Shown here piece after piece: positions 10,054 to 31,900 of a DNA stretch of 64,000 nucleotides. Position numbers and translations under genes: made by a program. This DNA comes from Amoebophrya sp. A120 (lineage: Eukaryota; Protista; Dinoflagellata). The stretch spans positions 1,336,513-1,400,512 of the forward strand of contig CAJINV010000015.1 in NCBI GenBank assembly GCA_905178155.1, written 5' to 3'. Under the pieces are notes generated by a model. That model was not told the origin of the DNA. It saw only the letters and a list, made by a program, of their open reading frames with translations, and ran no database searches. Every line of letters begins with the position of its first letter. Position 1 is the first letter of the stretch.

Positions 10054-10225
10054 CTTTATTTCTTGCATGTCTAGCTTGGTGCACATTTACATTGATGTGA
10101 TGACACGAATGTGGACTACTGGCCACGCGAGAAACGATCGTCGAGCCCGCCGACGGGATACCAGCTTCGCAACGCAGACCGGAAGGCGTTTCGCACGTCG
10201 AATCCAAACACCACGGGGGAGGGCC
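10054..10225 (-). repeat. Split direct repeat B2 of element 1
   Basis: Near-identical to 17072-17243 (CTTTATTTCTTGCRTGTCTAGCTTGG...CACGGGGGAGGGCC). Confidence 0.92.
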
Positions 10226-10523
10226 GCTCTGCACACCCTCTCTGCACAAACGCCTGAAAGCTAACGAAGCTATCCCTTCTGCGGGAACGAGATCTGAGTG
10301 AGCGCCGCGATAGAACCAGAAAAGCCTGACTATCGGCACTCTATAGTCCACCTCCGTATCACCACACCGAACCACACGAACAGAGATCACCCGAGCTGCA
10401 GCTGCTGATGCTGCTACGTACTGTACACCTGTCCGCACATCGTGCTGTCAGCACATGTAACTGCACCCATTTTTTTAATAGACTCTACACAAAAATACTA
10501 ATGCACGTGTCGCGATCCAATGT

Positions 10524-12836
10524 CTAAAAATCCACTTCTTCATCTGAAGAGCGATCACCAGTACGACCTTCTTCTTGCATTACTTGCCAGGCTGCCAAGG
10601 CATCGGCCAAGTGTGACACGCCTGGGGACACATCAACTACTAACAGTTTTTTATAATAATCATCCATCCCAAAGCCATCAACAATTTCATCAAATAAATT
10701 CGGAAACAGCTTCAACAAAATTGACATTTTTTCGTCCCTGGTAGGATAATCAGCAAGATTGAAGTGCGTAGGGACGCGGGTGTTCCACGGCTTCATATCA
10801 CCTTCCGCCGCAATCGACCAAAGTTCCGCTGTAAGCCGTGTGAACACCCACTTTTGCTCCTTGCTACTTTTGCCTTGTGCTAACAAATTTTGCTGAGCAC
10901 AAGTATTATCTATGGCGTGATCAAACCTCCTCCCCTGCAGCTCCTTGAAAAAGTACCGCAATGCCAGGGGGGCAACAGCTGTTTCCAACACATTGATCGG
11001 GTACAGGCGGTAGGAGGAGTGTAGTTGTGCTGCTGTACACTGCTGTCGGACACACCTGAACCGCCCATCTTTCACCAGGACCGCCGCCAAAACTCCCTTC
11101 CGATCGCTCCACTGTGCGTCGGTGTAGAGCAGCAGGTTGCTCGAAGTCGCATCTTCAAACTGCGCACTGCGCTTGAGCGGCAAGCTCATCACATGCTTGA
11201 TGGCGTACAACGCGTTCTTCACATCTTCACACACCGCGACTTCTTCCCGTGCCAGATGCAGCCTTAACGGCTTCATGATCGGGCTTAAAGACCTATCTGC
11301 CACCGCAGCCAAGGAGAAGGTCAATCGGCCTAGCAACGCGTCGGTGGTGGTCATGTCCAAAATCAACGTGTTTATCGCAACATCACAAACCTGCACAATT
11401 TGCATCTTCTTTTGCTCGGTCAGCTGCACAGTAGGATGATCTCCTCTAACATCAAAAAGCAATCCCAATATTTCTAAAAACGCGTCCACGTTGATTTTGT
11501 CCGTCATCGCCGGCAATCCCAACATCTGCAGCAGTTCCAGGAGCACATCGCGGACCAACTCGCCTAATCCTCGCAACACAAAATTCGGGAAATCATCCAC
11601 ATAATCCTCCGAGTTGATCCCGTAGTGCTTCCTGAGCACACTCCGCAGCAGTTTCCCCGGCCTGCACCAGCCCGTGACGGAGTGTCTGCTGCCAAAGATG
11701 GCAGACACTCCCACGAAGTAAAAATACTTCCGCAGCTCGGGGTGGAAGACGAGGATGGTGTTGTAACAACGATGTTCCGGCTTCACCATCATGTTGTTGT
11801 AACACCTTGCAATGTCGAGCAAAACGACGTCGAGCTCGTTTTTTACAACATTCATGGCACGCCGGAATTTCCTGCTCGACATTTCCTCGTCCACGCTGGC
11901 AAACGCCGCCTTATCCGCAAACGCTGGCTGCTTTGCTCCTGGTTTTAACAACTCCTCACTGAGCTTCTCCTGCTGTCCGGACACGTATCTGAGAAATTCT
12001 TTCTCATACTGTTTTTCCTGCTTCCTGCTCCTCTGCAGTACTTTGCGATTGTGTCGGACAATTTTTTTACCAGCGCAGGAGGGGTCGCGCGCCACTGCCG
12101 CGCTCGCCAAAACGTCGAGTGCCGACGGTATTGGCACTCGACACGGCAGTGGCGAACACTGGTTCGCACTGCACGCCGGGTCTATCAGCCGGACTTTTTT
12201 CGCCTGGTGCCGTGGAAATCTCCGCATGCCATAATAAATGGCTTCTCGCGCAGACTTGTTGGTGCGGATATCATCTGGAACTTCATGTGGGCCGTCTAAA
12301 AGCGCGTATCCCAGTTCGGGCAACACCGCCGTCTCTTTGACGGACTTCTCCCAGACGAGACGAGTATCGTCTTCCGACCACGCCGGTTTTGCATGCGCTC
12401 CTTCTAGCACTTTGGCGACGATTTTACTGGGTTTAAAAGCGCTGGGGTCGTCGCACATGCGGTCCTTCCTTGCTCTCGGACTCCATGTCGGATCCACCTG
12501 GCGCTCTCCAATCATGGAGAGGCCATGAAGCCACACGCGCCACGCGCAGGGATCGCTGCCGTGGTATCTCTGCCCCAAGAGCTCCCACAAGCCAAGCTTC
12601 TGACAAGTCTTGGGCTTGTTGATCCTGCTGTCGATCTGCGAGAAAAGGTCTGCTGATCTCGACGCCGTTTCCTCGTGCCACCTCTTCATCTCCGCATGTG
12701 CACGCTTTATTTTGTCTTCCGACATCTGCGCCGGGTCGGGTAGTTGTTGGGCCACATCAAAGGGGTGTTCGCGCAGCATGTCGAACTCCACCCTTTTCAT
12801 AACCTTATGAACATCGAGTGCCGTGGGCAGCGGCAT
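10524..12836 (-). CDS. Reverse transcriptase / RNase H (DIRS-like pol)
   Basis: RT motifs LLDIARCYN, AIFGSRHS and EDYVDDFP; RNase H motifs LLYTDA, INVLETA, AIDNT and NLADYPTR. The MPLPT start is shared with copy 2. Confidence 0.93.
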   Translation of the reverse strand: MPLPTALDVHKVMKRVEFDMLREHPFDVAQQLPDPAQMSEDKIKRAHAEMKRWHEETASRSADLFSQIDSRINKPKTCQKLGLWELLGQRYHGSDPCAWRVWLHGLSMIGERQVDPTWSPRARKDRMCDDPSAFKPSKIVAKVLEGAHAKPAWSEDDTRLVWEKSVKETAVLPELGYALLDGPHEVPDDIRTNKSAREAIYYGMRRFPRHQAKKVRLIDPACSANQCSPLPCRVPIPSALDVLASAAVARDPSCAGKKIVRHNRKVLQRSRKQEKQYEKEFLRYVSGQQEKLSEELLKPGAKQPAFADKAAFASVDEEMSSRKFRRAMNVVKNELDVVLLDIARCYNNMMVKPEHRCYNTILVFHPELRKYFYFVGVSAIFGSRHSVTGWCRPGKLLRSVLRKHYGINSEDYVDDFPNFVLRGLGELVRDVLLELLQMLGLPAMTDKINVDAFLEILGLLFDVRGDHPTVQLTEQKKMQIVQVCDVAINTLILDMTTTDALLGRLTFSLAAVADRSLSPIMKPLRLHLAREEVAVCEDVKNALYAIKHVMSLPLKRSAQFEDATSSNLLLYTDAQWSDRKGVLAAVLVKDGRFRCVRQQCTAAQLHSSYRLYPINVLETAVAPLALRYFFKELQGRRFDHAIDNTCAQQNLLAQGKSSKEQKWVFTRLTAELWSIAAEGDMKPWNTRVPTHFNLADYPTRDEKMSILLKLFPNLFDEIVDGFGMDDYYKKLLVVDVSPGVSHLADALAAWQVMQEEGRTGDRSSDEEVDF

Positions 12837-13678
12837 ACTGTTTTCTTTTTCCTCAAGTGACGCGAGTATCGATTTCAATCAGATCAGACGTAGAAAGACT
12901 CGGCGACTTCACTTCAACTCTACTCTGTGCACCAACACACTCAGTCTTTGCATGTGAAACAAGTGGCATGCGATGATCTACTTTAGTCTTACACTTTGAT
13001 GAGAATAAACGATGACTAGCTGCTACTTTGTGTGAGTAACTTCAATTCTTTGCACACTACTTCTCTGCCCCCAATGCGTACGACTTGCAAATGCTGCGCT
13101 TGCGCGACTTTTGAACGATTTGCGACAGTGCTTCCTTGACTCTGGCCAGCTACACGACTTCCATTTACAACCGACGTTCAAGCTTGACTGCTACTTTGTA
13201 CACAGCAACCGACGCTCTTGAGGACGTTCACGACGACTGCGTTGCACTTTGGCCACATGGGCAGCAATCTTTCTTGCTGGGGACACACACATATCTGCAG
13301 CTCCTAGCTGCAACTACAAGTTCGCACTTGCGCTCACATTTTTAAAAACAAATATGTATCTTCCGTTGCTGTGCATTTCCAACAGTAAGTTTGTACATGA
13401 CGCTAACAAATTGCTCTGTCATTTATTTTCCAGTATTGACAAATCAACGTCAATCGTCATAAACTATACTGTTGCCAGGTCACGTCACTGGATAAAAAAT
13501 CAGAAAAATGAATTTTTGATAAACAAATCAGTGCACAGCAGCCCGAAAAAACCATGTATAAGTACTCTCATGGAGAGTTAATTACTTTCTAATTTTTATT
13601 TTCATTTTTTGAAACGACATTAGCGGACGCTGCTGTGCACTGTACATTTGAAAAACTCATAAAAGGCAAGAATCACAT

Positions 13679-14989
13679 TCACACCGCGGCAGCCTCAGCC
13701 ACCGGCTTGCACCACGACTCGTACTCAATGTCCTTGAGCTTGTCGCTAAACGCGGACTGCAAGTTCTTCCACTCGTTCGGGCTCATGTCGCCCGCCGCCG
13801 CGTGGCGAAACCTGCACTCGCTACCGAACTTGCACGAACCCTTGTTCTTGAGAAAGTCGTGGCACCACTTGGCGTTGCCCTTCTTGCCTTTTTTGCCGTT
13901 TTTACCCTTACCTGAAGGAATCGTTACACATGCATGACTACCGTTTCAACTTCATGTCTGAACATATGCATGAAAAACAACTGCAAAGACTGTCTCATGA
14001 CACCACATTGATACCTACCTTTGTTGTTTTTTCCACCACTCTGATAGGGCCCATACGAGTCCCTGAGGTTGGACATTTCTTCCCGCATAGCGGCACGCTC
14101 CTCTGCGATCAAAGAGCGGGCTTCGGCCGTAGCCTCCGCCGACGCCTCACGCAGGTTCTTCAAACGCTGTAATTCTTCACCCCAGACCTTGTTGAAACGA
14201 TTTTCGGCAAAAAAGGTTCTCATACGGCCTTCGAAGGTAGTGCCGGGCTGGGAACTGTCGGGGGTCCACTGCTCCGTCTTGTAGACGATGGTCCCCAACG
14301 CCCTGATGGCGGTCTCCTCGGAGATCGTGGTCTTGGCCAACATGAGCTGACTGATGATCTGGCTACGCCTGTCGACCGTAATCAAGGGGTCGCGGTCCCT
14401 ATGGACCTTGGCCGCCATGGCCGCCAGCAACGCGTTGACCGAGAAAGGGAGGTCCTTGTTGACCTTGGCGGTACCATCCTCCTGAGTCAGCAGCTTCTTG
14501 AGCTCCTTCATCGTTTTACCTGATAATGAACGATTTGCCCAATTGCATTTCCATGATTGCCACATGTTTTTACACTTGCGCAAATAACTTTGCATACCAA
14601 TTATGCATGCACAACAAATGATCTATACCACTTTCCCACAACGCACGGGCGTTGATGACCTTGGCACACTTGGTGAAGTCGGCCTGGGTGGGCCGTAACT
14701 CGGGGACGTCGAGCGACAAGTTCTGGAAACTCTGCTCGATCTGATTGTCTTGTCCGACAATGAAGTCGGTCAACTCCCTGTTGGCAGCACCCGCTGTGAT
14801 GTGATTTTTTCCATATCGGAAAACGCAACATGCATGTCACATGGACTTCTCATCAGCTCTTACTCATTTTGAAAGAAACATACTACACGCATGCATCATG
14901 GCTGCATGAACTCAAACAACAAAGAAAACTATCATACCCTGGGCAACCGCAGCCGCCTGCTGCTGTTGGTTAACGTTGACATTGGCCAT
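13679..14989 (-). CDS. Spliced gag-like protein with C-terminal CCCH zinc finger (4 exons)
   Basis: Exons 14989-14938, 14793-14629, 14519-14019 and 13911-13679 joined by three phase-1 GT..AG introns. The product ends ...GKKGKKGNAKWCHDFLKNKGSCKFGSECRFRHA...YESWCKPVAEAAAV*, homologous exon by exon to 21141-22649. Confidence 0.8.
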
Positions 14990-15310
14990 TTTTTTTTACG
15001 AAGTGCTAAAAGCTACTTCAACAGAGTTTTGATATCCTCAGAGGTGTAAACGGACTTTTCCTACGGGTGTGCGTTTTTTTTTTTAATTGAAGCTCAACTG
15101 TAACGCAACGAAAACCAATGACGCACTGTGACTTGAAATCGTGGCACTTTGATCCTCGGCGGAACCTTTACTGTGCATTTTGCTGAACACGCGGGTGACA
15201 GGTGTGGAGACTTTCTTGGCGCAAGCTGTGCATTCCTATTTTTCTATGCTCTTCACATGCTCTTAAACAAAAAGCCAGCATCTTCATGCACTTCATCATT
15301 TTGCGTAACC

Positions 15311-16861
15311 TTAAATGCCGCAGAAGTTCAGAGGGACAAACATGTTCCGACTCACATACGGGATAGATCTTATGTAATACATCAGCATTTGCATGTTAGC
15401 CCAGCACACTATCACGCTTCACACTTGCGCTGCTAGCTTCACATATCTGCACTCTTATTTTTCCATTTTTCCATCACAATCTCCACACAAAAGCCTCAAG
15501 CTGGCATCGCAAGAGCTGCACATCATAGGGCAATGCACGATGACACGAACTGGATCGATCTTCATCAGGTACAGATGCGTAGCACTTCCTATCCTCCAAC
15601 TATGGCTTGCGGCATCTTTTTCATGCGGAAACGTGCGCTTCATTATCTTAGCAATGTCCAAGTCTTCTCTGCACAGATGTGGCAACACACTTTTGAACTT
15701 GCAAACACAGAACTCTGGCGGGTACTTGATGCGCTTCAACTGCTCACAAATGCAAGTGACCCTTACCATGGCGCACTTGTTAACTTTGGTAGAGGCTTCC
15801 TGAAAGTTTAGTAACAAGTCTCCATTAACATCATATCGTAAAGAGATGAGACCTGTGTCGCCTGTGTTCTTCACGTCCAGCAAAAAGGCTTCGCTTTTCC
15901 TCAATGCTGCATAAAAAGCCAAGAGCAGAGCCACCGCCTCTTGATACAACAATTTACTGCACACCCACATCTGGTAGATATGCATTATCGTCATGGGAGA
16001 CTTCTGCTTTTTCCTGCCTAGAAAGCCTCTACGAACCAGTGTAGAGAGTTCCTTCATCACGTTTTCTTTTTCTGTACCGGATAACCTGCAGCGCTCGTCC
16101 GCCAAAACATCCTTCACAGCCGGCTGTATGCTTGCATACCCGGCGGCCATACTCGTCCCCACAAACGCCCGCACTGATGGATACGACCACAGGTGGTACG
16201 GGAGATTCTGCGCCACTTTTTCATACCGTCTAATCCGTGAAGCACGATTGTCATCGGCTTTTTTTGTGGAGGACATCTGGTCCAACTCCGACATCGCCGA
16301 CTGTAGTAACATGGGGTCCTTGGCGATATCCAACGCCAGAGCCAGCTTGCTCTGCGCTGTCCGCCCCTCCGCCTCCGTACGGGCGTTGAACACTGCGTCG
16401 ATACTGGCTTGCGCCGTCACCATCTGCTTGACGAACACGTCCTTGGGGACGTCGAGCACGTTGCTACGCTGAAACGGATCATCTTTCCGTCTACACCTGA
16501 TGCTGTCGAGCACTGGCTCCCCGTTTTTGTACTGTATGCTGAGCCGTAACTGGGAAAGCGTGTTGCTCATCTGCACTGCCTGTGCCTGGTTCAAAATCAT
16601 CACTCCCTTACTGGTGGGCGTCGGTACTCGTTCTTGCAACTGCTCGCGCGTGAACGTACTGGCAGGAAGCTCTCCTGCACTCGCAAGTAGCTGCGCTGGC
16701 AACCTGGTGCCGCTAGCTGCACAGTCTCGTATGGCTTTCGCTGCCACCCTTTCTCCGAAGGCTTTTTTCATGCTATCGACCGACCGTAGGTTGTCTGCTG
16801 CCTGCGCTTCCAACTCTGCCTTCATCGAGGCATCGAAATCATCTTCACTTTCTGACAACAT
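15311..16861 (-). CDS. Tyrosine recombinase interrupted by a 123-bp insert (15406-15528)
   Basis: ALRKSE (catalytic R) and HSWRIG (HxxR). IVHC|RWANMQMLMYYIRS is restored only after removing 15406-15528; collinear with copy 2 YR. Confidence 0.88.
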
Positions 16862-16887
16862 GGCGTGGGTGGGTGGGCAAGAAAAAG

Positions 16888-17243
16888 CCACCAGCTACGC
16901 GAGCTGGAGTTCTTCGAGGTCCTGCTACCCTTGAGCTATATCTATTTGTATGTATACAGGCGCGTGACGCGCAAATACCGCTCGCGTTCAGCGCTCGTAC
17001 TGGACTACACTCAGATGCACCGGCATGGTCCTGCCGAAATAAAGGCGGCGGGCTCGTCCCTTGCCGCTCTACTTTATTTCTTGCGTGTCTAGCTTGGTGT
17101 ACATTTACATTGATGTGATGACACGAATGTGGACTACTGGCCACGCGAGAAACGATCGTCGAGCCCGCCGACGGGATACCAGCTTCGCAACGCAGACCGG
17201 AAGGCGTTTCGCACGTCGAATCCAAACACCACGGGGGAGGGCC
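16888..17243 (-). repeat. Internal B1-A2 junction repeat of element 1
   Basis: 16888-17072 matches 17888-18072 and 17073-17243 matches 10055-10225; the two abut, reproducing the joined element ends. Confidence 0.92.
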
Positions 17244-17887
17244 TTTCGCCACCTACGCTCGACCACGAGGAGAGGGCGCCGACTGAGGCGCATCTGGAAC
17301 TCCCCCACCCCGCTCGACGACGCGAGCGTCTCGAAGACCTACAGCGACGCATGCTGGTGCCGCGTTTTGACATCCTACTACTCGCTCATCGTGAGCTGCA
17401 CACAACACTGGCTGCGGCGCCTTAGCAAGCATATCTGATGCCCGCTTTCGACAACAACAGGCACGCAGCACTGCCTCTCGACGAGTCGATAAGCAGCGCC
17501 ACGCGCGCAACCTGGTGCTAACAGCGAAGCAAGCTTCACCGTCAGAACCGTCACACGAGTGGGGGCGCACCACCGGAGAGGTGATCCTCGCCTGGGCGAG
17601 AAGCTACCGACTCCCCGAGGGCAGCGCTGACGCCATATGCTCTGCAGCCACTGCATCGGCCTGCATCCACCTAGGACGCTGCAACACGCATTCGCACCTG
17701 TGCACACTTCGCACTAAACCGCACTTCTCTACCTGGCTACCTGCCTGCGCACTGTGCTGCCACACTTGTGGACCAGCCTCAGCCACAACCTAGCCTCCGT
17801 CAGCTGTGCTACCATGGAGCGACACCGGAGACTAGCGCCTGCAGTGGGCACGGACGGTGAGACCGCGAAACCAAGAAAAAAAAAAAA

Positions 17888-18072
17888 CCACCAGCTACGC
17901 GAGCTGGAGTTCTTCGAGGTCCTGCTACCCTTGAGCTATATCTATTTGTATGCATACAGGCGCGCGGCGCGCAAATACCGCCCGCGTTCAGCGCTCGCAC
18001 TGGACTACACTCAGACGCACCGGCATGGTCCTGCCGAAATAAAGGCGGCGGGCTCGTCCCTCGCCGCTCTAC
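17888..18072 (-). repeat. Split direct repeat A1 of element 1
   Basis: Near-identical to 16888-17072 (CCACCAGCTACGCGAGC...GCCGCTCTAC). Confidence 0.92.
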
Positions 18073-18252
18073 ACGTGTAAAATTTTTGCAAGTTTTTAAA
18101 ATTTTAAAAAATGCAGAGTTTTACTGTAAATCAGTCGGATCTGCCTTAGCGGATCAAGAGTCTAAGTGAAGCCATTCAGTTTCTGCGGAAAGTCGCAAGC
18201 TTTTATATGATTTTGGAGGTTTGGCACAATTCTAGCAAGATTGCCTTTTTCA

Positions 18253-18416
18253 AATACAGCGGCGAGGGACGAGCCCGCAGCTTCTTTTGTCGCTTTCAAG
18301 TGACACCGATGCCATCGCAGATGCGTTAGAAGTCGTGCGCGCACGCGCGCTATAGTTTTGTAGTAGCTACGGGTAGCTGGGCCTCCGAGCTTGCGCCTCG
18401 TTGGCGTATTTTCTTT
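18253..18416 (+). repeat. Split direct repeat A1 of element 2
   Basis: AATACAGCGGCGAGGGACGAGCCCGC...GGCGTATTTTCTTT is repeated at 19294-19457. Confidence 0.92.
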
Positions 18417-19128
18417 GGCCTCACGGAATTCACCATCCGTGCCCACAGCAGGTGCCGCGTCTTCCAGTAGTAGGAAGGCGCGGTGGCAGTGTTTTGCCGC
18501 GTGGCAAACTGCCGTCGTCCTGTGTCTTGCACGTGAGTGCAAGCAGGCGCGCGTCCTGTGTCTTGTCGCGTAGGCAAGCAGGCTGCTCACGGTGCTCGTG
18601 TGAGCCGTTGTCGATTGTGCTGCACGCAGATGCAAATGTAGGTGCCCAGTCAGGGTGGTGCAGGTTAGCATAGCCGCTGTAGGCATGCGCCTGCACATGC
18701 GTGTGTCTAGTTGCCCAGGCCGTGTGAGAGCCGGGAGTGGTGTGCCAGTAGAGCACCGTGCTGGCTGCCAGTCGGCGTCTGCGCTGCTGTTCGGCGGGCC
18801 GGTCGTTCTCTACTCCGGTAGGGATCACCCCGTTGGCAGTGCGCACCGTGCGGCTGCGTTTGTCTCCAGGCGCTGTTTCTCTCACGAGGAACAGCGCCTC
18901 GAGGCGCTGTTGGACAGGCTCGCCTGCACAGCAGCGCTTCGCGTCGATACATGTCCACAGGACGAAGTTCCTGGACGCCGGCAGTCTGCGAAGGTCATTG
19001 TGGTACGGCAAAGCAATGCCGCCGTAAGTCGTGCGTTCCTCGGGTGCCCTCGACGTCGAGCGCCAGTGGGAGGTCTTTGTATGTGCCTCGGTCGGCGCCC
19101 TCTCCTGTCGAGAGCGGTGTTGGCAAAA

Positions 19129-19457
19129 GGGGCCTCCCGGTTTCGTATCGAGCGTGCGCTCGATCCAGGCGTCAGCAGCTCGTTGTCTCTGCGCAGCGTC
19201 CGCGCAGGCGCTCGTCGAGTTCGTGGGACCAGACGGTAGCTGTACACCAGTGCACCAAAGTGTAAGAGAGTAAAAGAAGAAAGACGAGAAAAGAATACAG
19301 CGGCGAGGGACGAGCCCGCAGCTTCTTTTGTCGCTTTCAAGTGACACCGATGTCATCACAGATGCGTTAGAAGTCGTGCGCGCACACGCGCTATAGTTTT
19401 GTAGTAGCTACGGGTAGCTGGGCCTCGGAACTTACGCCTCGTTGGCGTATTTTCTTT
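19129..19457 (+). repeat. Internal B1-A2 junction repeat of element 2
   Basis: GGGGCCTCCCGGTTTCG...GACGAGAAAAG (matching 25920-26084) is followed directly by A2. Confidence 0.92.
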
Positions 19458-19480
19458 TCCCACCCGCCCACGCCAAGAAA

Positions 19481-20911
19481 ATGGTCGACTCAGGCTCGGA
19501 AGATGACTTCTGGCAGGAGCTCAAAGGTGAAATGAAAGAGCAAGCCGAGGAAAACTGCAGTACGTACGAGAATATGCAGAGGGCTTTTGGTGCCAAAGTA
19601 GCGGAAAAAGCCGCGCGGCAGTGTGCAGAAGCCGGTGTAAAGTTGCCGAATTCGCTGTTGCGGGAGTCAAAGTCACTTCCGGCGAATCTGTTCACGCATG
19701 AACAAGTCAGCGAGCCGTGTGTACCGTGTGAAGCTCGTGGTGTACTGCAAGGAACGCAGGCGCAGATGTTACGGCTGGTTGCCAACGTGTCGCGGTTGAA
19801 GATTGTGCAGAGAACGCACCCGGACGGCAAAGTGGAGCTGCAGTGCTTTAGGAAGCACGACAACCCGTTCGCGAGGTCGGACAGCACGGACGTGTCCAAG
19901 GAGTTGTGTACGGCAAGATTAGTGGAGGGACAAAGCACGCTGGATGCAGTCTTTGCGGCTAGAACGGAGCAGGAAAAAAGTAGTGCGCGGAGCAAACTGC
20001 AGATGGCGCTGGACATCGCGCGCGACCCGCATCTGTTGCAGGAAGCGCTGTTGGACTACGAGGACAAAACCTCCACGGAAAAAGCCGACGCCAACAGGCA
20101 GTCCAGGATTAGTCGCTACATCAAGATCGCGGAGTATCTTCCCAAAAATTGCAAACCTTGGACTTTCCCAAGTGTTAGAATGTTTATAGGAGCCAGCCTA
20201 GCGGCTGGCTACCTGAGTATTAAGCCCGCTGGTGTTGATGTACTGAATCATCCGAGTTGCGTGTTGTCTGACGCAGAAAAAGACACAATTCACAGAGAAC
20301 TTGCATCACTAGCACGCAGAGGATTTTTGGGAAGAAAGCGACAGAAATCACCGTTAACCATCGCGCATATTCTCACCTACTGGAAGTTGCAGAAGCTATC
20401 GCACAAGCAAGTAGTTGTGTTACTACTCTGCTTCTATGGAGCGTTACGCAAGTCAGAATGTGCAAAGTTAGATGTCAAATTTACAGGTCAAAAAGGATTG
20501 ATATCCATGAAATACAAAGAGAGCGATTTAGTTTTTAACTTCCAAGAAGCGAGCGCCAAAGTAAACACGTGCTCGCTCGTCAGAGTGCGTTGTGTGTGTG
20601 CAGAACTGCAGAAAATAAATTATCCAGAGTGGTTTTGTGTGTGCAGACTCAAAAGCATCATTCCGCAGCTGTGTGAAGATGATTTAAATGTGGCAAAAGT
20701 CATGAAGTCCGTTTTTGAAAAAGAAGAGCATGTGGCTAGCCATTCATGGCGGATCGGGTGCGCCACACACCTGTACTTGGCAAAACTGGATCCAGTAAGA
20801 TGCATTGTGCACTGCCGTTGGGCCAACTTACAAATGCTCCTCTATTATATTAGAAGTGCGCCACATGTATCGCGGTCTATGTTTGTGGACTTAATGTTTG
20901 CTGGTGTGTAG
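19481..20911 (+). CDS. Tyrosine recombinase
   Basis: ALRKSE, HSWRIG and HCRWANLQMLLYYIR give the R-HxxR-H/W-Y catalytic set; uninterrupted. Confidence 0.92.
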   Translation: MVDSGSEDDFWQELKGEMKEQAEENCSTYENMQRAFGAKVAEKAARQCAEAGVKLPNSLLRESKSLPANLFTHEQVSEPCVPCEARGVLQGTQAQMLRLVANVSRLKIVQRTHPDGKVELQCFRKHDNPFARSDSTDVSKELCTARLVEGQSTLDAVFAARTEQEKSSARSKLQMALDIARDPHLLQEALLDYEDKTSTEKADANRQSRISRYIKIAEYLPKNCKPWTFPSVRMFIGASLAAGYLSIKPAGVDVLNHPSCVLSDAEKDTIHRELASLARRGFLGRKRQKSPLTIAHILTYWKLQKLSHKQVVVLLLCFYGALRKSECAKLDVKFTGQKGLISMKYKESDLVFNFQEASAKVNTCSLVRVRCVCAELQKINYPEWFCVCRLKSIIPQLCEDDLNVAKVMKSVFEKEEHVASHSWRIGCATHLYLAKLDPVRCIVHCRWANLQMLLYYIRSAPHVSRSMFVDLMFAGV

Positions 20912-21140
20912 TAGTGTAAAAGCACAGATGTAAAAGGAAAAAAACCAAATCGCCTGCAATGGCTGCTCCTCCATGTTATTTGTGTAGATGCGTGTGTTCA
21001 AAACTGTTACCGTCACGTTCAAACATGACTGATCCGAGATCAAGCTTTCATTGCGTGTAAAAATGTGAATCACTTCCAAAAAAACCCGTAGATTCGTCCT
21101 TTCCCTTTACTGAGTTTAGAAAAAGTTTTCGTCGTCGAAG

Positions 21141-22649
21141 ATGGCTGATGCAGGAGCAGCACCCGCGGCAGCTGCCGCCGCAGCGGCTGGTGCAGTTGGC
21201 TAAGTCCACACTTGCTCATGCGCACTCACATGCACATTACGTCCAAGGTTGAAATCTGTGTCAAATGCATGTGAATTTCTGTCCAAAAATCACTACGCAG
21301 GTGTTGCCGCAGCCGGCGCGATGCCGGCTGCGGAGGGACGGCGCCTGGTCGATTTTATCGCCGGGCAAGATGAGCAGGTCGCCACCAGTCTGCAGAACAT
21401 TGTCCCGCCGATGCCGGAGTTACGGCCCGCCAAAGAGCCCTTCAAGAAAGCGGCGCAGTCGTGCAACGAGCGTAACTTGTGGGAGAAAGGTGCGTGTTGG
21501 TTTTCCGTTGCAAAAATGTGTGTGCAATGAAGTGATGATATGCATTTCCCATGCATAACTGCATCTACAACTCGTATAAAACACGATAAAAATGCACACG
21601 TCAGGTCATGTTCTGAAGACCGGGAAAGCCGTCGGTGGCGATGAGCCAGCCAAGTTGCCGCTCTCCGTGCCGAGCCTCCTCTTCGCCATGGCGGCCAAGT
21701 GTCATCGTGACCGTGAACCCATCCTGACTACCGCAAGAAGAGACTCCATGTTAAGCAGTTACATGTTGTGCAAGACGTCCCTGTCCGCTGAGGCAGCGGA
21801 CAAAGTGTTCGGTGCCATTTTGGCTAAGACCGAAACCATCACCAGTGATGAAACCCAAGCGGGCACGACCTACGAGGGTCGCATGCGTCTCTACTTCGCG
21901 GAAGCCAGGTTTGCCAGGATGTGGCAGGAGGAGGTCGGTAAGCAGCGCGGCATCATCGAGCAGACCCATGAAGTCACTGCCGCGGCCAAGAAGGACATCG
22001 GTGAGGCGATGAAAAAGGTGAACGATGCGCAGGAGCAGCTGAACAAGCAGCAGCAGCAGCAGCAGCAGCAGAGCAGCTGGCATGGTCAGCCCTACGGAAA
22101 ACAGTCCAAGGGCGGAGGAAAGAAAGGTAGGTATTGTATGTGCAGATATGACTGTTACAAAAGCATTTGTGTTGTATTTGAAGTGGCATAGATGATGATC
22201 GATTCAGGCGCTAGTGCGGCATGTTCTCCCCGGCACGCGCTCTTTATGTAACTGACCTAGTGGCCTTCCCAGCCGTGGAGACGTTGCAAATTTGTTTCTC
22301 TTCTTGCTGACATTTGCCACATGTAAATCTGATTTCCGTCAGGAAGTTCACATTGATGTCGCGACACAAATGCGCATAGAATTGGAATATCATTGCTCTA
22401 TCAGGTAAAAAGGGCAAGGGCAAGAACACGACAAGTCCGTTGTGCTTCGAGTTCATGACCAACAAAGGTGCGTGCAGTTGGGGAAGCGAGTGCGCCTACC
22501 GCCACCCCAAGAAGAACGAGATCTCCACCGATGAGTGCAACAAGTTGAAAGAAGGAAAGCAGGGGTGGAAGTTCAAAAATGTAGCCTATGAGTCATGGTG
22601 CCCGGAAGTCCCGGCTGCGGCTCCGGCCACTCCGGCGGCTACGGCGTAG
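21141..22649 (+). CDS. Spliced gag-like protein with C-terminal CCCH zinc finger (4 exons)
   Basis: Exons 21141-21189 (or 21198 with a GC donor), 21301-21489, 21605-22126 and 22405-22649; all introns phase 1 and ending CAG. Ends ...GKKGKGKNTTSPLCFEFMTNKGACSWGSECAYRHP...YESWCP... Confidence 0.8.
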
Positions 22650-23372
22650 ATGCTGCGTCGACTGTCGTGTTATGTTTTTTTTGTGAGCGCACAGCAGTCT
22701 TCACCACTGTTTGCAAAACGAAAAATGTCCATGTCGCTGTTAAATAATTTTGAGAATAAATGAAAAAATTAGAAATTCAATATCTTGGTGGAGGCTGCTG
22801 TGCGTATCGTTCAACATTTGTTTCGATTTTTTACCTTGCAACAAGGTTCGCTTCACACATGCACTCACGTTTACACATTGGACAGTAATTTTTCAAGATT
22901 GATGATTGTGGAACCTAGCTCAACAGAATGAGCCTCATGAATGTGAGTTGACATGAAGTCGATTTTGAACACGAGTTTCATCTTCAAATTCACCGTGGTT
23001 AGCATCGCGTCGAGCCAGTAGCCATTTGGCACTTTCCAGTCTGCATTGCGTGTTCGAAACCTGTAGAAAGCTGCGCGGCATTGTCGTATGTCGTGAATGC
23101 AGAGAAAATCTACATTCTGTCGGTGCTAGTCGGTCTGAAATACGCGCAAATGCAGCATTAGCAGTGCAAAGAGTCTTTCAGCAATGTCGTGACATAGCTT
23201 CGCACAAGGTCGGTGTGTGCAAAAGTGCAGTACAAATTGGCAAGTCAGCGATCGGTATATCTGGGGCAAATGCAAATCGCAAATGTAACACATGCAAAGC
23301 GGCCATCTTATGTTCTCATTGTAAGTTACCACACGTGATTACTTGTCTCCGCTGCATAGATGTAGTGTTAAG

Positions 23373-25658
23373 ATGCCGTTGCCTACCGAGGCTGACGTAC
23401 ATAATGTACTGAAACGGGTCGAGTGCGACTCTATTCGTGAGCATCCGTTTGATACCGTGCAACACTTACCTAACCCGGCCAATTTATCTCGTGAATCACT
23501 CACACAGCAGCACAACTTAGTAAAAAAATGGTCAGAAGAGACTCGTGAGCGATCAAGCGCAATCTTTGCGTCCATCGACGAGGAGATCAGGAAGCCGCAG
23601 GTGTGTAAGCACCTGGGCTTATGGGAGCTGCTTGGTGCGAAGTATCATTGCACAGACCCGCTCGCATGGACAGTGTGGCGCGACGGGCTGGCAATGATAG
23701 GGAGATGCGAGGTAGACGAGTCCTGGTCACCGCGGAAAAAGCGGGACAAAATGAACGGCCGCGAAGAGGATTTTGTTCCTAGCAAGGTGGTGCAGGACAT
23801 CCTCGATGGGAGACACAAAAAACCGGCGTGGTCCGACGAGTTGATCAAATTCACCTGGGACAGGTGTCTGGAGGAGACGAAAATTGTGCCGGAGCTTGGG
23901 TGCGAGCTCCTAAGAGGGCCGCACCCAATTGCGGAGGACATTGTGACCAATGAGGAGGAAAGGATGAAAATCTACTACGGGTGCAGACGGTTCCCGCGTG
24001 TGCAGCCGAAGAAAATCAGAATGATCGACCCGGCGGTTTCTGCAAACGCCTGTTCACCGCTGGATAAGCGTGTGCCGATTCCTGGGGCTTTGGACGTGCT
24101 CGCAAATGCAGCAGCGGCGCGCGATCCTTCCGTTTGCGGTATGAAGATTGTGAAGCACAACAAGCGGATACTCCAAAAATGTAGAGGTGCAGAAAAACGG
24201 TACGAAGCCCAATTTGTGAAGATTGTGAAGAAGGAATTGCGGCAAATGGATGCGGATTTGATAAAAGAGTGCGCAGTACAGCCGAAGTACGAGGAGAAGC
24301 CAGTGTTCAGCAGTGAAGGGCTATCCAACAGGAAGAAGCGGAGGTTAGAGAACACGGCTCTCAACGAGTTGGAGTGCGTCTTGTTGGACATCGCGAAATG
24401 TTACAACAGCCTGATGGTTAAAGTCCAGCACCGGAAGTACAACACGGTGCTCGCGTACAACCCCGAGGTGGGCAGGTACTTCCGCTTCGAAGCTGTGTCT
24501 GCCATCTTCGGCAGCAGACACAGCGTCACCGGCTGGTGCCGGCCGGGCAAGCTGCTGCGGTCGGTGTTGAGGAAACATTATTTCCTCAACTCGGAGGATT
24601 ACGTGGACGACTACCCCAATTGGGTGCCCAAGGGGCTCGGCGGCCTGGTCCGCGACTACTTGCTCGAGCTCCTGAAGCTACTGGGGCTTCCGGCGATGAA
24701 CGATAAGATACAAGTCGCCGACCTCCTGGAGGTGTTGGGACTCCTTTTTGATGTTCGCGGCGACAAGCCGACTGTTGCTGTCACCGAGCAGAAAAAAGCG
24801 CAGATCATCGCCACCTGCGATGCTGCGTTGTCCACGCTCTGGCTGGATGAACCCACGGCAAACGAATTGGTGGGGCGACTGACGTTTGCGCTAGCCGCGG
24901 TGGCGGATCGGGCCCTAAGCCCGCTGCTGAAGCCCATCCGCAGGCACCTCTCGAAGCAGGAGACGGCAGTAACGCAGGCGGTGGCCAGCGCGTTGCACGC
25001 GGTCAAGGAAGTAATGAAGCTTCCGCTCAAAAGGAGCGTGTCCTTCGAGCCGACTTCCAGCAAAAGCGCCTTGCTCTACACCGACGCACAATGGTCAAAT
25101 AAAAAAGGTGTTTTGGCTGCTGTGTACGTCGAAAGTGGCGTGTTCAAGTGCGTGCGGCAGCACGTGTGGGCAGACCTGCTGCGCCCGGACTTCGCGTTGT
25201 TTCCGATTAACGTCTTGGAAACCGCCGTGGCACCGCTTGCCCTGATGTACTTCGCCAAGGATCTGGCGGGCAAGCGGTTCGACCACGCCATTGATAACAC
25301 CTGCGCGCAGGAGAGTCTCCTGGCGCAGGGGAAAAGCGGGAAGCAGAAGTGGGTGTTTACTAGGTTGTGCGCGGAGTTTTGGACCATCTCCGCCATGCAC
25401 GACATGAAGCCGTGGAACACCCGGGTGCCGTCAGATTACAATCTGGCGGACTACCCGACCCGGGATGAAAAAATGGATGTGTTGTTGCGTGTGTTTCCTA
25501 GTCTTTTTTCAGAAATCAGTGAGTCTTTCCACATGGATACATATTTCAAGAAGATTCTCAAAGGAGATGTGTCGCAAAATGTGCATAAGCTCGCGTGTGT
25601 GTTGGCCGGTGACGAAGACACGGACCCTGGTGTGTCATCTGATGATGATCTTGTGTAG
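23373..25658 (+). CDS. Reverse transcriptase / RNase H (DIRS-like pol)
   Basis: LLDIAKCYN, AIFGSRHS, EDYVDDYP; LLYTDA, INVLETA, AIDNT, NLADYPTR. Confidence 0.93.
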   Translation: MPLPTEADVHNVLKRVECDSIREHPFDTVQHLPNPANLSRESLTQQHNLVKKWSEETRERSSAIFASIDEEIRKPQVCKHLGLWELLGAKYHCTDPLAWTVWRDGLAMIGRCEVDESWSPRKKRDKMNGREEDFVPSKVVQDILDGRHKKPAWSDELIKFTWDRCLEETKIVPELGCELLRGPHPIAEDIVTNEEERMKIYYGCRRFPRVQPKKIRMIDPAVSANACSPLDKRVPIPGALDVLANAAAARDPSVCGMKIVKHNKRILQKCRGAEKRYEAQFVKIVKKELRQMDADLIKECAVQPKYEEKPVFSSEGLSNRKKRRLENTALNELECVLLDIAKCYNSLMVKVQHRKYNTVLAYNPEVGRYFRFEAVSAIFGSRHSVTGWCRPGKLLRSVLRKHYFLNSEDYVDDYPNWVPKGLGGLVRDYLLELLKLLGLPAMNDKIQVADLLEVLGLLFDVRGDKPTVAVTEQKKAQIIATCDAALSTLWLDEPTANELVGRLTFALAAVADRALSPLLKPIRRHLSKQETAVTQAVASALHAVKEVMKLPLKRSVSFEPTSSKSALLYTDAQWSNKKGVLAAVYVESGVFKCVRQHVWADLLRPDFALFPINVLETAVAPLALMYFAKDLAGKRFDHAIDNTCAQESLLAQGKSGKQKWVFTRLCAEFWTISAMHDMKPWNTRVPSDYNLADYPTRDEKMDVLLRVFPSLFSEISESFHMDTYFKKILKGDVSQNVHKLACVLAGDEDTDPGVSSDDDLV

Positions 25659-25919
25659 AATGTGACTCATCTCTCTGTTTTTTTTGTGAAAAAATGTGGC
25701 TTACATGTGAACGCAGTGTGCTAGTTATCTCAGGTCTGTTTGCACAGGTTGCTTGTGACTCAAGGTCAGTGGTGGTTGGTGTCGATACTACCGCTTTGCG
25801 CGCCGATAGCATGTTCTATCGCGGTGCACTACTTCGACGTGCTTGTGCGGTTCTGCGTTGTGACATCGTCTGTGACGCCTTTGTGCTTTCGCGTGTTGCA
25901 TCCGTGGTTGTGTTGGAGC

Positions 25920-26086
25920 GGGGCCTCCCGGTTTCGTATCGAGCGTGCGCTCGATCCAGGCGTCAGCAGCTCGCTGTCTCTGCGCAGCGTCCGCGCAGGC
26001 GCTCGTCGAGTTCGTGGGACCAGACGGTAGTTGTACACCAGTACACCAAAGTGTAAGAGAGTAAAAGAAGAAAGACGAGAAAAGAA
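25920..26086 (+). repeat. Split direct repeat B2 of element 2
   Basis: Near-identical to 19129-19295. Confidence 0.92.
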
Positions 26087-28986: not shown

Positions 28987-31900
28987 ATGTCGCAGTACGG
29001 AGCTGCGACCGCGAGCGGGAACAATCCCGCGACAGGCGCGCCAGGAAATGCCGCAAACTGGGACTGGGAAGACTTCTACAAGAATTACGAATTTTATCTC
29101 CAGTATGCAAACACGAGCGGGGGCCAACACGACGGTGCTCAACAAAATGCGGCGAATAAACCTAGTACCCCGGCGAATCACCAGCCGCTGGTGAAGGACC
29201 ACATCCCCCTGCAATTCAAGCCTTTTGAAGCGGACTTGAAAAAGTTCCCGAACTTTTACGACAAGGCGAATTGGTGGAACAAAAACGGCGGGTCGAATAA
29301 CGCAGCGCAGAAGGGAGGCAAAAACAATAATTCGGACTGGGATCTGAACCGCTACGACACTCCGGGCGCGATGACCAAGGGAAATAAAAACACCGGGGAC
29401 AAAAACAACTACAACGACCACTACAATTCCAACCACAACAATACTAGTTCCTATGGAAACAGCGCGTACAACTACGGGAGCAGTAATTCAAATTCTTCAT
29501 CCGATCCTTACCAGCACAAGGGTGTGAACAATTCTGCTTTTGGCGGCCAGGGGTACGGAAAAGGATCATCGTCTAATGGCGGCTCCTCGGGCAAGGATTG
29601 GGCCAGCGGTATGGATCATTACAAGAGCAGTACTAACTCCTATCACAAAGGCGGTGGCGGTGGGCCGTACGACAAGGGTTATTACGACAAAAACAACTAT
29701 ACGGGAACCACCTACGGCGGTAATGCGCCAGCCGGCTATAATTCATCCAAGGGCAATGTTGACTATGGGAAGGGAGACTACGGCAAGGGTGACTACTACG
29801 CCAAGGGAAGCAAGGCCGGTCTTGGCGGTGGTGGTACTGCTGGTGCTGCTTCTGTGGACCAACAGTATTCGTCACACCAACCAGGAGCGAGTGCAGCCAC
29901 CAGCACTGTTCAGCAGCAGCAGCAGAACCACTACGCTTCCGGGTTCGAGGCGGGCCTAGCAGCGGCGAAGGAGTTGCTGGAGAAGCAGAAACATTTGGAG
30001 GAAAGCGTGCTAGCCTTGAAGGCGACGCTTGGACAACAGCAGCAGCAGCAAAACGGGGCGACGACGACTGCAGTGGGAGCTGCAAACACCGCGGGAACTG
30101 CTGCGAACGTCCTCGCTTCGGCGGTCTCCGCGTCCTCCTCGGCCACGTCCAGCGCCAGCAGTTCCCCTTTCATCGCTGCGCAGTCCGTCGCGCGGCCCGC
30201 GGAACTCGCACCACCCTCTGCGGTGAACGCGATCGCGGCCAATGGGCAGGCGAACAAGATGAACAAAACTCCGGAAAATTATAACTCCGGTCGCCCAGCG
30301 GTCGGTGATCATGCCATCAAAGGTGGGTACATGAACAACGACGGCAATCTCGAGAAGGAGCTGCAGCAGAAATTAAACACCCCCTCGCACATCCCCGCGA
30401 CGCTTTTGCAGTTTTGCCAACCCGTGGATAGCACTAGCAGTGGCCAAAATGCGAATAACGGTGAGGAGGATCAAGTGACAGCTTCCAGTTCCAACAAAAC
30501 TGCAGCGAACAACACCAAGGCATCTACTTCTGGTGATTTGCTGTTCAACCTGTCCAACCTGGTCCAGCAACCGAAAAAAAAGCAGTGGCCGGAGAGTACT
30601 CGGACCAAGGAACATGAGAATTACCGGGGGTTCAATGCTTTTGAAGAGCGGATTAAGCACCAGGTCGATCAAAGAATCCACGCGTGGAACCGGACGATGA
30701 TCGAAAAAACCGGCCAGGGAGTACCAACGGAAATAACAAACGAGGTGGCGAAGCAGATTGTGTGGAAACAGCAGCAGGCCGTAGCCGCGGCCCAACAGGT
30801 TTGGCAGGAGAAGAACAACGGGACTGCAATGAATTATCAAAGGCAAAAATGTCTGGGTCTGGAACAAAGCAGCTTGTCATGCTAAATCTGAATCGTGTAA
30901 AAATCTGTGTTGCGTGATTGCCAAAAGCTGTCCACTTCTGACCTAATCGCGAGGCAGTTTCTCATGCAGGATAGACATGGTAGAACTCTCACAGAATCTG
31001 TAATGCTATGTCCTACATGCCAGACCTCATGGGTCATGGAAAACCTGCATGACAAGTCTGGCATTCATCCAGACCCAGACATTTTTGCATTTGATATGAA
31101 TCACCATGGTACTACAACTACATCAAACAATCCGGTAGCAAACACGTTCAACACCAGTTTTAACTTTTTCGGCAACAAAAATACCGACAACCGCTATGTC
31201 CCGGGTCAGCTGGTCACGATGAAAAGCGGGGTGGCTGGGGGTCAACATCATCTCCCCGGGACAGCGAAGACGGATACGGAACCGAAGAAAGACTCGACCT
31301 TGCCGATTGTAAAAGATCCGTCGACCTTAACTCGGGACTCCGAGTCGAATACTTCCAAGGATGGCATGATGAACAACGTTAAATCTGCGGCGTCGAGCTC
31401 GTCCGGGAAACTGTCCGTGTCTGGCAAAAATGCCGCGGTCCCAACCGTCGCACCACCGCCACCGCCTCCGCCACCAAGCGCGCCGCTGCAATTATCTTCG
31501 CCCCAGACCCAGCAAGCCGCTCGGCGGCTCGCTGAACAAGCGCAGAAGTCTACGCAGTCGCAGGCGATCGCGGTGCAGCAGGCGGCGGCGCAGAGGGAAC
31601 TGATGAAAGCGATGGTGGCAAAAGACACTACCGAAGAAGTTCCGCCGCCCCCTCCACCTTTGTCCTCCGATGCGTTCAACAAGATTTACGACAACCACCA
31701 GCGCTTCCAACAGGCTGCCGCGGGCGTGGACGCGGCGAAACAGTACGTTGGCGAGCAGGTAGGTGGTGCATCCACCACAAACCACGTCTCTTTGATGCAG
31801 CAGCAAAAGGACCAGAATGCTGCGCAGAAGCAGTTCGCTGCGGCTTACGGGGCTTTGGCGTCGTATTACCGTGGGAATACGTACGTCGAGCCGGGCTTGT

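Follow-up and report, generated by a model that had tools for sequence, protein, structure and literature searches.

Probable DIRS-order retrotransposons of Amoebophrya sp. A120 with the tyrosine recombinase gene first and an internal repeat junction upstream of all genes

What kind of mobile element places its recombinase gene first and keeps a copy of its own end-to-end junction in front of all its genes? The question was raised by a stretch of 64,000 nucleotides from Amoebophrya sp. A120 (contig CAJINV010000015.1, positions 1,336,513 to 1,400,512; hereafter the window), in which two large elements lie head to head, copy 1 at 10054-18072 on the minus strand and copy 2 at 18253-26086 on the plus strand. 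Both follow the order A1 - X (0.6-0.7 kb) - B1A2 - YR - gag-like gene with a CCCH finger - RT/RNase H - B2, where A and B denote direct repeats, X a leader, YR a tyrosine recombinase and RT/RNase H (RT/RH) a reverse transcriptase with RNase H. According to the list of open reading frames (ORFs), all genes lie on one strand within each copy. A sequence-only reading of the window had described two diverged but collinear elements with YR, gag and RT/RH on one strand, and the ORFs, the repeats and a nucleotide identity of 58-63% between the copies bore this out; at that identity, the copies represent separate lineages within one family and not recent duplicates. Since an RT/RH, a YR and an internal end-to-end junction copy were all found, together with the lack of a target-site duplication, the elements carry the marks of the DIRS order. 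We therefore consider it very likely that both are autonomous YR retrotransposons of this order, with three genes on one strand, the layout A1 - X - B1A2 - genes - B2 and a replication cycle that would resemble, by analogy, that of better known members.

The repeats of both copies define this layout. Copy 1 starts at its 5' terminus with repeat A1 (17879-18072, minus strand), which contains the conserved motif GGCGAGGGACGAG (18053-18065), followed by the unique leader X (17253-17878) and by the internal repeats B1 (17072-17252) and A2 (16879-17072), which abut each other in the junction AAATAAAG/TAGAGCGGC; repeat B2 (10054-10234) forms the 3' terminus. The two A repeats are 95% and the two B repeats 97% identical. 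In copy 2 (plus strand), A1 occupies 18253-18425, with the same motif at 18261-18273, the leader of about 700 bp 18426-19128, B1 19129-19295, A2 19294-19466 and the 3'-terminal B2 25920-26086, with identities of 94% (A) and 98% (B). The sequence predicted for the B2-A1 junction of copy 2, GAAAAG-AATACAGC, is that of its internal B1A2 junction. Chance cannot account for direct repeats of 164-194 nt that are 94-98% identical. The terminal repeats are without exception direct, and the inverted terminal repeats plus internal complementary region (ICR) that characterize DIRS1-like elements are absent; the only inverted pairs found were copy-to-copy matches, namely 91 nt inside the RT/RH ORFs and a 41-nt motif at the B/A junction. 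The elements are separated by a unique spacer of 180 bp (18073-18252), whose sequence occurs elsewhere only on the short contig C245. This contig (about 2 kb) repeats the head-to-head junction at 100% identity and is probably assembly redundancy, not a second locus.

Is this layout an accident of one locus? The genome (115.5 Mb, 401 contigs) was searched with the RT protein, giving 36 matches, and 15 further elements were assembled from adjacent loci. Their RT identity to copy 2 is 47-100% in group 1 and about 29% in group 2. The order A1 - X - B1A2 - YR - ORF2 (the gag-like gene) - RT/RH - B2 was present in 10 out of 10 group-1 elements with full data, and the layout of all four group-2 elements was equal to it. 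In these 14 elements all four repeats were recovered, terminal and internal copies being 94-100% identical, and the internal B1A2 junction always consisted of the B2 end joined to the A1 start. Thus, the claim that the junction lies upstream of the ORFs was confirmed in all 14 elements. One further element, E06, has the ORF order of the rest of the family, its A1 lying beyond the DNA fetched. A genome search with a YR profile identified 19 YR-RT pairs, 3.7-5.3 kb apart and on the same strand, and in every one of them YR is upstream (three group-1 copies, C1:599999, C4:11502343 and C14:1005522, were examined for YR-RT order only). With 14 elements from two deep groups and 19 of 19 pairs in agreement, the view that the layout is no one-off rearrangement is upheld.

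The termini were fixed by a relative of copy 1 on contig C6, which is 98% identical to it from the A1 edge to the last base of B2 and has unrelated flanks: similarity is lost at the edge of A1 and stops exactly at 10054, so that the ends of copy 1 coincide with A1 and B2. This is the check by other genomic copies that had been proposed, and it indicates that the whole composite moves as one unit, since A1 to B2 is shared at two unrelated loci. ORFs are open in most copies. A third group (loci L024-L027, L044 and L045 on contigs C1, C4, C5 and C112), with at least five copies that are 99.9% identical, has been recently active. It also shows the order YR-gag-RT/RH, yet its repeats are canonical, arranged as A1-ORFs-B1A2-55bp-B2 or simply as A-ORFs-B. 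Its proteins measure 317 aa (short, probably a YR), 396 aa (gag with CCCH) and 780 aa (RT/RH); the evidence for this YR is weak (hhalign E 0.011 and motifs). It follows that the permutation of the repeats arose later than the gene order.

The largest ORF encodes the RT/RH. It is 784 aa long in copy 1 (10524-12878, minus strand), with 59% identity to the copy 2 protein, whose ORF (23343-25658, plus strand, first ATG at 23373) has 771 codons. Its sequence contains LDIAKCY, FGSRHS and YVDD, followed by the RNase H residues TDA..E..DN..N-x-x-AD (D-E-D-D). The copy 2 ORF matched no Pfam family even at E 10, RVT_1 was detected in six of the 17 RT members of the family, and a profile of those 17 sequences found no match among PDB sequences. 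An AlphaFold 2 (AF2) model was obtained with a mean predicted local distance difference test (pLDDT) of 87 and a predicted template modelling score (pTM) of 0.82, and its best Foldseek matches were the RTs of CaMV, MMLV, HIV-1 and Ty3 (E 5e-11 to 2e-8). The identity of the protein was therefore settled by its modelled structure, as an RT of the LTR-retroelement type with RNase H. The ORF ends directly after RNase H, leaving about 260 nt to B2. The methyltransferase that follows RNase H in DIRS1-like and PAT elements was not found there, as Pfam gave no family at E up to 10.

The YR ORF of copy 2 (19442-20911, plus strand, 489 codons, first ATG at 19481) is uninterrupted. It matched the Pfam family Phage_integrase with E 1.6e-4 over profile positions 10-169 of 172, and the same family was matched in five of 13 YR members, all below the Pfam cut-off. 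An alignment of the 13 sequences keeps the residues R (LRKSE), K, HxxR (HSWR), H (HCRW) and Y (LLYYIRS), and every Foldseek match listed for the model is a tyrosine recombinase (Cre, lambda Int, IntI, XerH, XerA and Tn1549 Int), with alignments spanning about 310-330 columns. In the ORFs scanned, Pfam detected no rve, methyltransferase, protease or DDE integrase. Motifs and predicted fold together thus point to a tyrosine recombinase and not to a DDE integrase, and both RT/RH and YR are proteins that are supported by fold searches but barely visible to sequence profiles. Between lineages, synonymous divergence (dS) is saturated for YR and RT at a nonsynonymous divergence (dN) of 0.19-0.42, and dN/dS of ORF2 is 0.24-0.33 where computable, which indicates purifying selection on all three genes. 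The YR profile also matched nine genome loci with no RT match nearby (C5:7449814, C94:358, C11:1523842, C6:666153, C26:164824, C6:4430728, C3:9948981, C3:6570243 and C3:8439899; E 1e-28 to 1e-105); these may be RT-less derivatives or Crypton-like elements.

A YR gene had been claimed for both copies, and it is present in both, with the correction that in copy 1 it is interrupted by an insert of 123 nt (15406-15528, minus strand). The first coding segment (15529-16891, within the ORF 16891-15455) was delimited by alignment and carries R, K and HxxR up to ..VIVHC; the last one (15311-15405), recognized by the conserved downstream peptide, starts with WANMQMLMYYIRS and contains the catalytic Tyr. 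Inserts of 123-127 nt occur in four elements of three lineages, namely copy 1 (Ew1), E07 (L035), E06 (L034) and E10 (L038), each time one codon past ..VIVHC and directly before the segment with the catalytic Tyr, and the conserved Tyr-bearing peptide resumes after them in a different frame. At this codon the insert is lacking in seven further lineages. It does not have GT-AG ends; in E10 its two ends are an inverted repeat of 8 nt, CTTATGCA..TGCATAAG. Non-canonical introns with inverted-repeat ends have been described for Amoebophrya (PMC7789003). On the RT tree the insert is patchy, being present in E10 and absent in its sister E09, which fits either repeated loss through the copying of spliced RNA or repeated gain. 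Taken together, the insert is probably a non-canonical intron kept through retrotransposition.

The gag-like gene has a comparable structure. It consists of conserved blocks in different frames, and the gaps between them (about 95 and about 250 nt) are fast-evolving and rich in indels. In copy 1, tblastx distinguished at least three such segments within 13688-14788 (minus strand), including an ORF of 223 aa (13924-14595); in copy 2, the gene (21285-22669, plus strand) comprises the segments 21285-21515, 21592-22191 (an ORF of 199 codons) and 22386-22669. The CCCH finger ascribed to this gene is real and reads C-x9-C-x5-C-x3-H in both window copies (13802-13864 in copy 1 and 22443-22505 in copy 2), but it belongs to a conserved segment of its own, downstream of the 199/223-aa gag ORF and in a different frame. 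It was also found in most group-1 lineages and in group 3. Judging from these patterns, it is probable that in at least part of the family the gag-like gene and, in some lineages, YR hold introns. If they are introns and are kept in the element, the RNA that is replicated would be unspliced.

What does the leader X contribute? Its length varies from 0.14 to 0.9 kb across the family, and it keeps several blocks over nine group-1 lineages: GGCGAGGGACGAG just inside A, GGGTAGCWGGRCC and a long block at the X/B1 border. A stem-loop with a 5-bp stem and a loop of 9-10 nt is also kept at the A1/X border in nine lineages. In copy 1 it is located at 17849-17867 (minus strand; stem CGCGG..CCGTG) and in copy 2 at 18422-18441 (plus strand), where it begins in the final bases of A1. 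In three lineages its stem shows compensatory changes on both sides (CACGG/CCGTG, CATGG/CCATG and CGTGG/CCACG). Given this conservation, the leader is not junk, and the stem-loop might serve as a cis-acting signal in priming, in packaging or in binding of the recombinase. A complete B/A unit directly precedes the genes and might carry the promoter. Two other interpretations of this region were rejected. A primer site for a tRNA after A1 was dismissed because the TGG found at the A1/X border is missing in part of the family and the stem-loop after it, compared by eye, is unlike a tRNA 3' end; a reading of the ends as long terminal repeats (LTRs) was dismissed because A1-X-B1 is not repeated at the 3' end. 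A 39-nt piece of the copy 2 leader (18793-18831) recurs with 92% identity at six other loci (twice on C13, twice on C10, once on C1 and, as a weaker match, within a related element on C13) and could be part of a small dispersed repeat or of an introner.

The insertion sites were then considered. No target-site duplication was found at the flanks of the 14 elements. In the internal junction, the B2 end and the A1 start overlap by 0-6 nt, mostly A-rich (AA, AAA, AAAA, TAAAAT and similar), so that the overlapping bases are present at both element ends. The most informative case is E19 of group 2, which is inserted in a tandem array of 130-bp units (L043:1-913 and L019; contig C5, about 8,548,300-8,557,800). 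The intact target unit reads CCTCAGCC-GTAAAA-GCAGTAATTTTT and the junction of the element is GATCA-GTAAAA-TCGTAAAACTAG; the insertion has target-GTAAAA-element on its left and element-GTAAAA-target on its right, so that the 6-nt core is found twice, as after recombination of attP with attB. Ends of this kind are characteristic of conservative site-specific recombination in which both partners share a short core. Short junction bases common to the target have also been described for DIRS elements (PMC7192593). The sequence AAAATTTTGGRA, which occurs near some flanks, was rejected as a target-site consensus since it is not enriched in the window, and k-mer sharing over 28 flanks revealed only an A/T-rich context and no target consensus.

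How could such an element replicate? For DIRS-1, experiments have demonstrated that a full element cannot be restored from its shorter transcript without the internal junction copy (PMC7192593). Taking B1A2 as the equivalent of that copy, a working cycle can be proposed, modelled on DIRS-1, PAT and Ngaro. An RNA of nearly full length would be transcribed from within A1 to within B2. After synthesis of the cDNA, its ends would be completed and joined on the internal B1A2 template, which would yield a B2/A1 junction. The YR would then recombine this junction with a genomic site that matches the junction core in a few bases, and no target duplication would arise because these bases are common to both partners. 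Each transposition would reproduce the permuted layout faithfully. In formal terms, A1-X-B1A2-genes-B2 corresponds to A1-genes-B1A2-X-B2, the canonical repeat layout of Ngaro and VIPER, once the same circle is opened at its other B/A junction. It follows that the junction copy need not sit 3' of the genes, and that the mechanistic novelty is modest.

To place the elements among their relatives, RT sequences were compared. Full-length relatives were present in Amoebophrya AT5.2 and A25 and in European Nucleotide Archive (ENA) and Logan assemblies. They are followed, at E about 1e-48 and over the RT/RH part only, by a tier to which Perkinsus chesapeaki and Symbiodinium belong. Among 20 RT relatives, a cluster look-up gave only Amoebophrya AT5.2, Perkinsus chesapeaki and Symbiodinium as organism labels. 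In a tree of 44 RT sequences, the Amoebophrya clade is fully supported on a long stem; groups 1 and 2 fall into one subclade together with further relatives (support 99), group 3 lies outside it, and each group has a relative in another Amoebophrya species. A metagenome scan returned a single contig of 1.3 kb, and an Atlas search only generic RT/RNase H clusters. On this sampling, the lineage has so far been seen only in Amoebophrya, in ENA/Logan assemblies and in metagenome contigs.

With the Ngaro elements, which are built as A1-[gag, RT/RH, YR]-B1A2B2 (PMC8547959), the Amoebophrya elements share split direct repeats, the lack of a methyltransferase domain and of a target duplication, and solo or derivative repeat units. 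They differ in that all ORFs of groups 1 and 2 come after B1A2, only group 3 having the canonical arrangement, and in that YR comes first in all 19 pairs. In VIPER, as in TATE, a gag-like gene is followed by YR and RT/RH, with A1 as the 5' terminus and B1-A2-B2 as the 3' terminus (PMC6681497). Like VIPER/TATE, our elements have three separate ORFs, no methyltransferase, a YR upstream of RT/RH and split direct repeats of 100-400 bp, in hosts with trans-splicing and unidirectional gene clusters; unlike them, they have YR before gag and B1A2 upstream of all genes, and their gag carries a CCCH finger where that of VIPER has a CX2CX4HX4C box. DIRS-1 of Dictyostelium likewise combines YR, RT/RH, an internal copy of the circle junction and junction bases common to the target, but has inverted terminal repeats, an ICR and a methyltransferase domain. 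In the nematode form of Pat1 and in Kangaroo, the internal repeats are located inside the element, between pol and YR (PMC4157794), so that precedents for a move of the internal repeats already exist. Those elements contain a methyltransferase domain and start with gag, and the YR of Kangaroo is inverted, whereas the Amoebophrya elements have no methyltransferase and all their genes are on one strand, downstream of the internal junction.

Several results weigh against the proposal that the window elements are working DIRS-order retrotransposons with such a cycle. The YR model has low confidence (pLDDT 62), neither the YR alignment nor a single YR sequence found a match in a collection of 5.8 billion proteins, and the profile of the 13 YR sequences found none among PDB sequences. 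There are only one or two copies per lineage (one for copy 2 and two for copy 1). Three RNA runs with the same species label, compared with window positions 13650-19649, placed 0 reads, which is no test of expression, transcript ends or splicing. Finally, a two-junction circle should yield both permutations, but only one is seen, since X is upstream in 14 of 14 independent insertions, an outcome that a coin flip would give with a probability of about 6e-5. A simple circle is thus an incomplete model: either the intermediate departs from a symmetric two-junction circle, or the junction that is used is marked by something outside the repeats. The low copy numbers and the lack of RNA reads, together with the intron-like inserts in the genes, could suggest dead relics or host-domesticated genes in place of active mobile elements. 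We regard this as very improbable, because ORFs are open in most copies, all three genes appear to have been under purifying selection between lineages, terminal repeats are up to 100% identical, two copies with 98% identity lie at unrelated loci and group 3 copies are 99.9% identical. It is just as improbable that each element is a composite, in which a short non-autonomous A-X-B stands in tandem beside an autonomous A-genes-B and the repeats are simply the ends of two elements. Such a structure is reminiscent of group 3, where near-identical copies exist as A-ORFs-B and as A-ORFs-B-A-55bp-B, and solo AB units or SIRE-like pieces are known in Ngaro of Cafeteria (PMC8547959) and VIPER of T. 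cruzi (PMC6681497). It is contradicted by copy 1 and its C6 relative, which share the entire A1 to B2 at 98% at unrelated loci, by the presence of X-B1 directly upstream in 14 of 14 elements of very different lineages, and by the genome itself, which yielded no complete A-X-B unit standing alone for either window family.

A more serious rival, to which we nevertheless assign only a small chance, is that the family has already been catalogued, as ordinary DIRS-like elements of dinoflagellates or perkinsids (e.g. SymbioDIRS or alveolate Repbase entries) with YR-first forms on record. De Mendoza et al. (2018) described DIRS-like elements in Symbiodinium with integrase and Pol ORFs in both orders and an RT that was not aligned by Pfam (PMC5890265). 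SymbioDIRS-Dnmt3 resembles our elements in its host from the dinoflagellate lineage, its Pfam-divergent RT and the existence of two structures, and Perkinsus and Symbiodinium are the nearest labelled RT relatives beyond the Amoebophrya clade. However, it has a DNMT3 in Pol and repeats arranged as A-coding-B-A-B, as against an upstream junction and no methyltransferase (no DNA methylase match) in the Amoebophrya elements, and the Amoebophrya clade is set apart from these relatives by its long, fully supported stem. No paper on Amoebophrya was found that names YR elements, and no paper with this combination of gene order and repeats was found either. The earlier statement that no described group has the combination accordingly holds for the papers found, with SymbioDIRS (PMC5890265) and Pat1/Kangaroo (PMC4157794) as partial precedents. 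The suggestion of a new DIRS-order lineage fared similarly: the architecture and an RT clade without named references favor it, but the structural features of this order were already known to shuffle. We conclude that the DIRS-order retrotransposons described here are a new structural variant of a known order and not a new kind of element, and that they probably form a new lineage inside the DIRS order, differing in layout from DIRS1, PAT, Ngaro and VIPER as these are described.

A bolder interpretation, which we hold possible but rather doubtful, is that the family is a YR lineage of superfamily rank, with an ancestral order YR-CCCH gag-RT/RH, in which groups 1 and 2 moved the complete junction and a structured leader to a place before the genes, unspliced, intron-bearing RNA is replicated and integration does not proceed through a symmetric two-junction circle. 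If true, splicing would be needed for an active recombinase in some lineages, and the standard model for elements with split direct repeats would need revision. Beyond the two elements, the window contains two long adjacent ORFs of 632 and 894 aa (28987-33591, plus strand) that have no Pfam family.

These observations matter because YR retrotransposons are the least understood order of retroelements, and their mechanism has been studied experimentally only for DIRS-1. The Amoebophrya family amounts to a natural permutation experiment: where the junction copy lies with respect to the genes is not fixed, and the permutation is inherited faithfully in 14 of 14 elements, which is not predicted by a symmetric two-junction circle. 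It also offers an example of introns that were probably retained during retrotransposition, in a host whose genome is noted for its invasive non-canonical introns. For annotation, part of the 'unclassified' repeats of Amoebophrya is explained, comprising RT and YR genes that were missed by profile libraries. The family adds a fourth gene order to the catalogue of the DIRS order and extends YR retroelements to Syndiniales.

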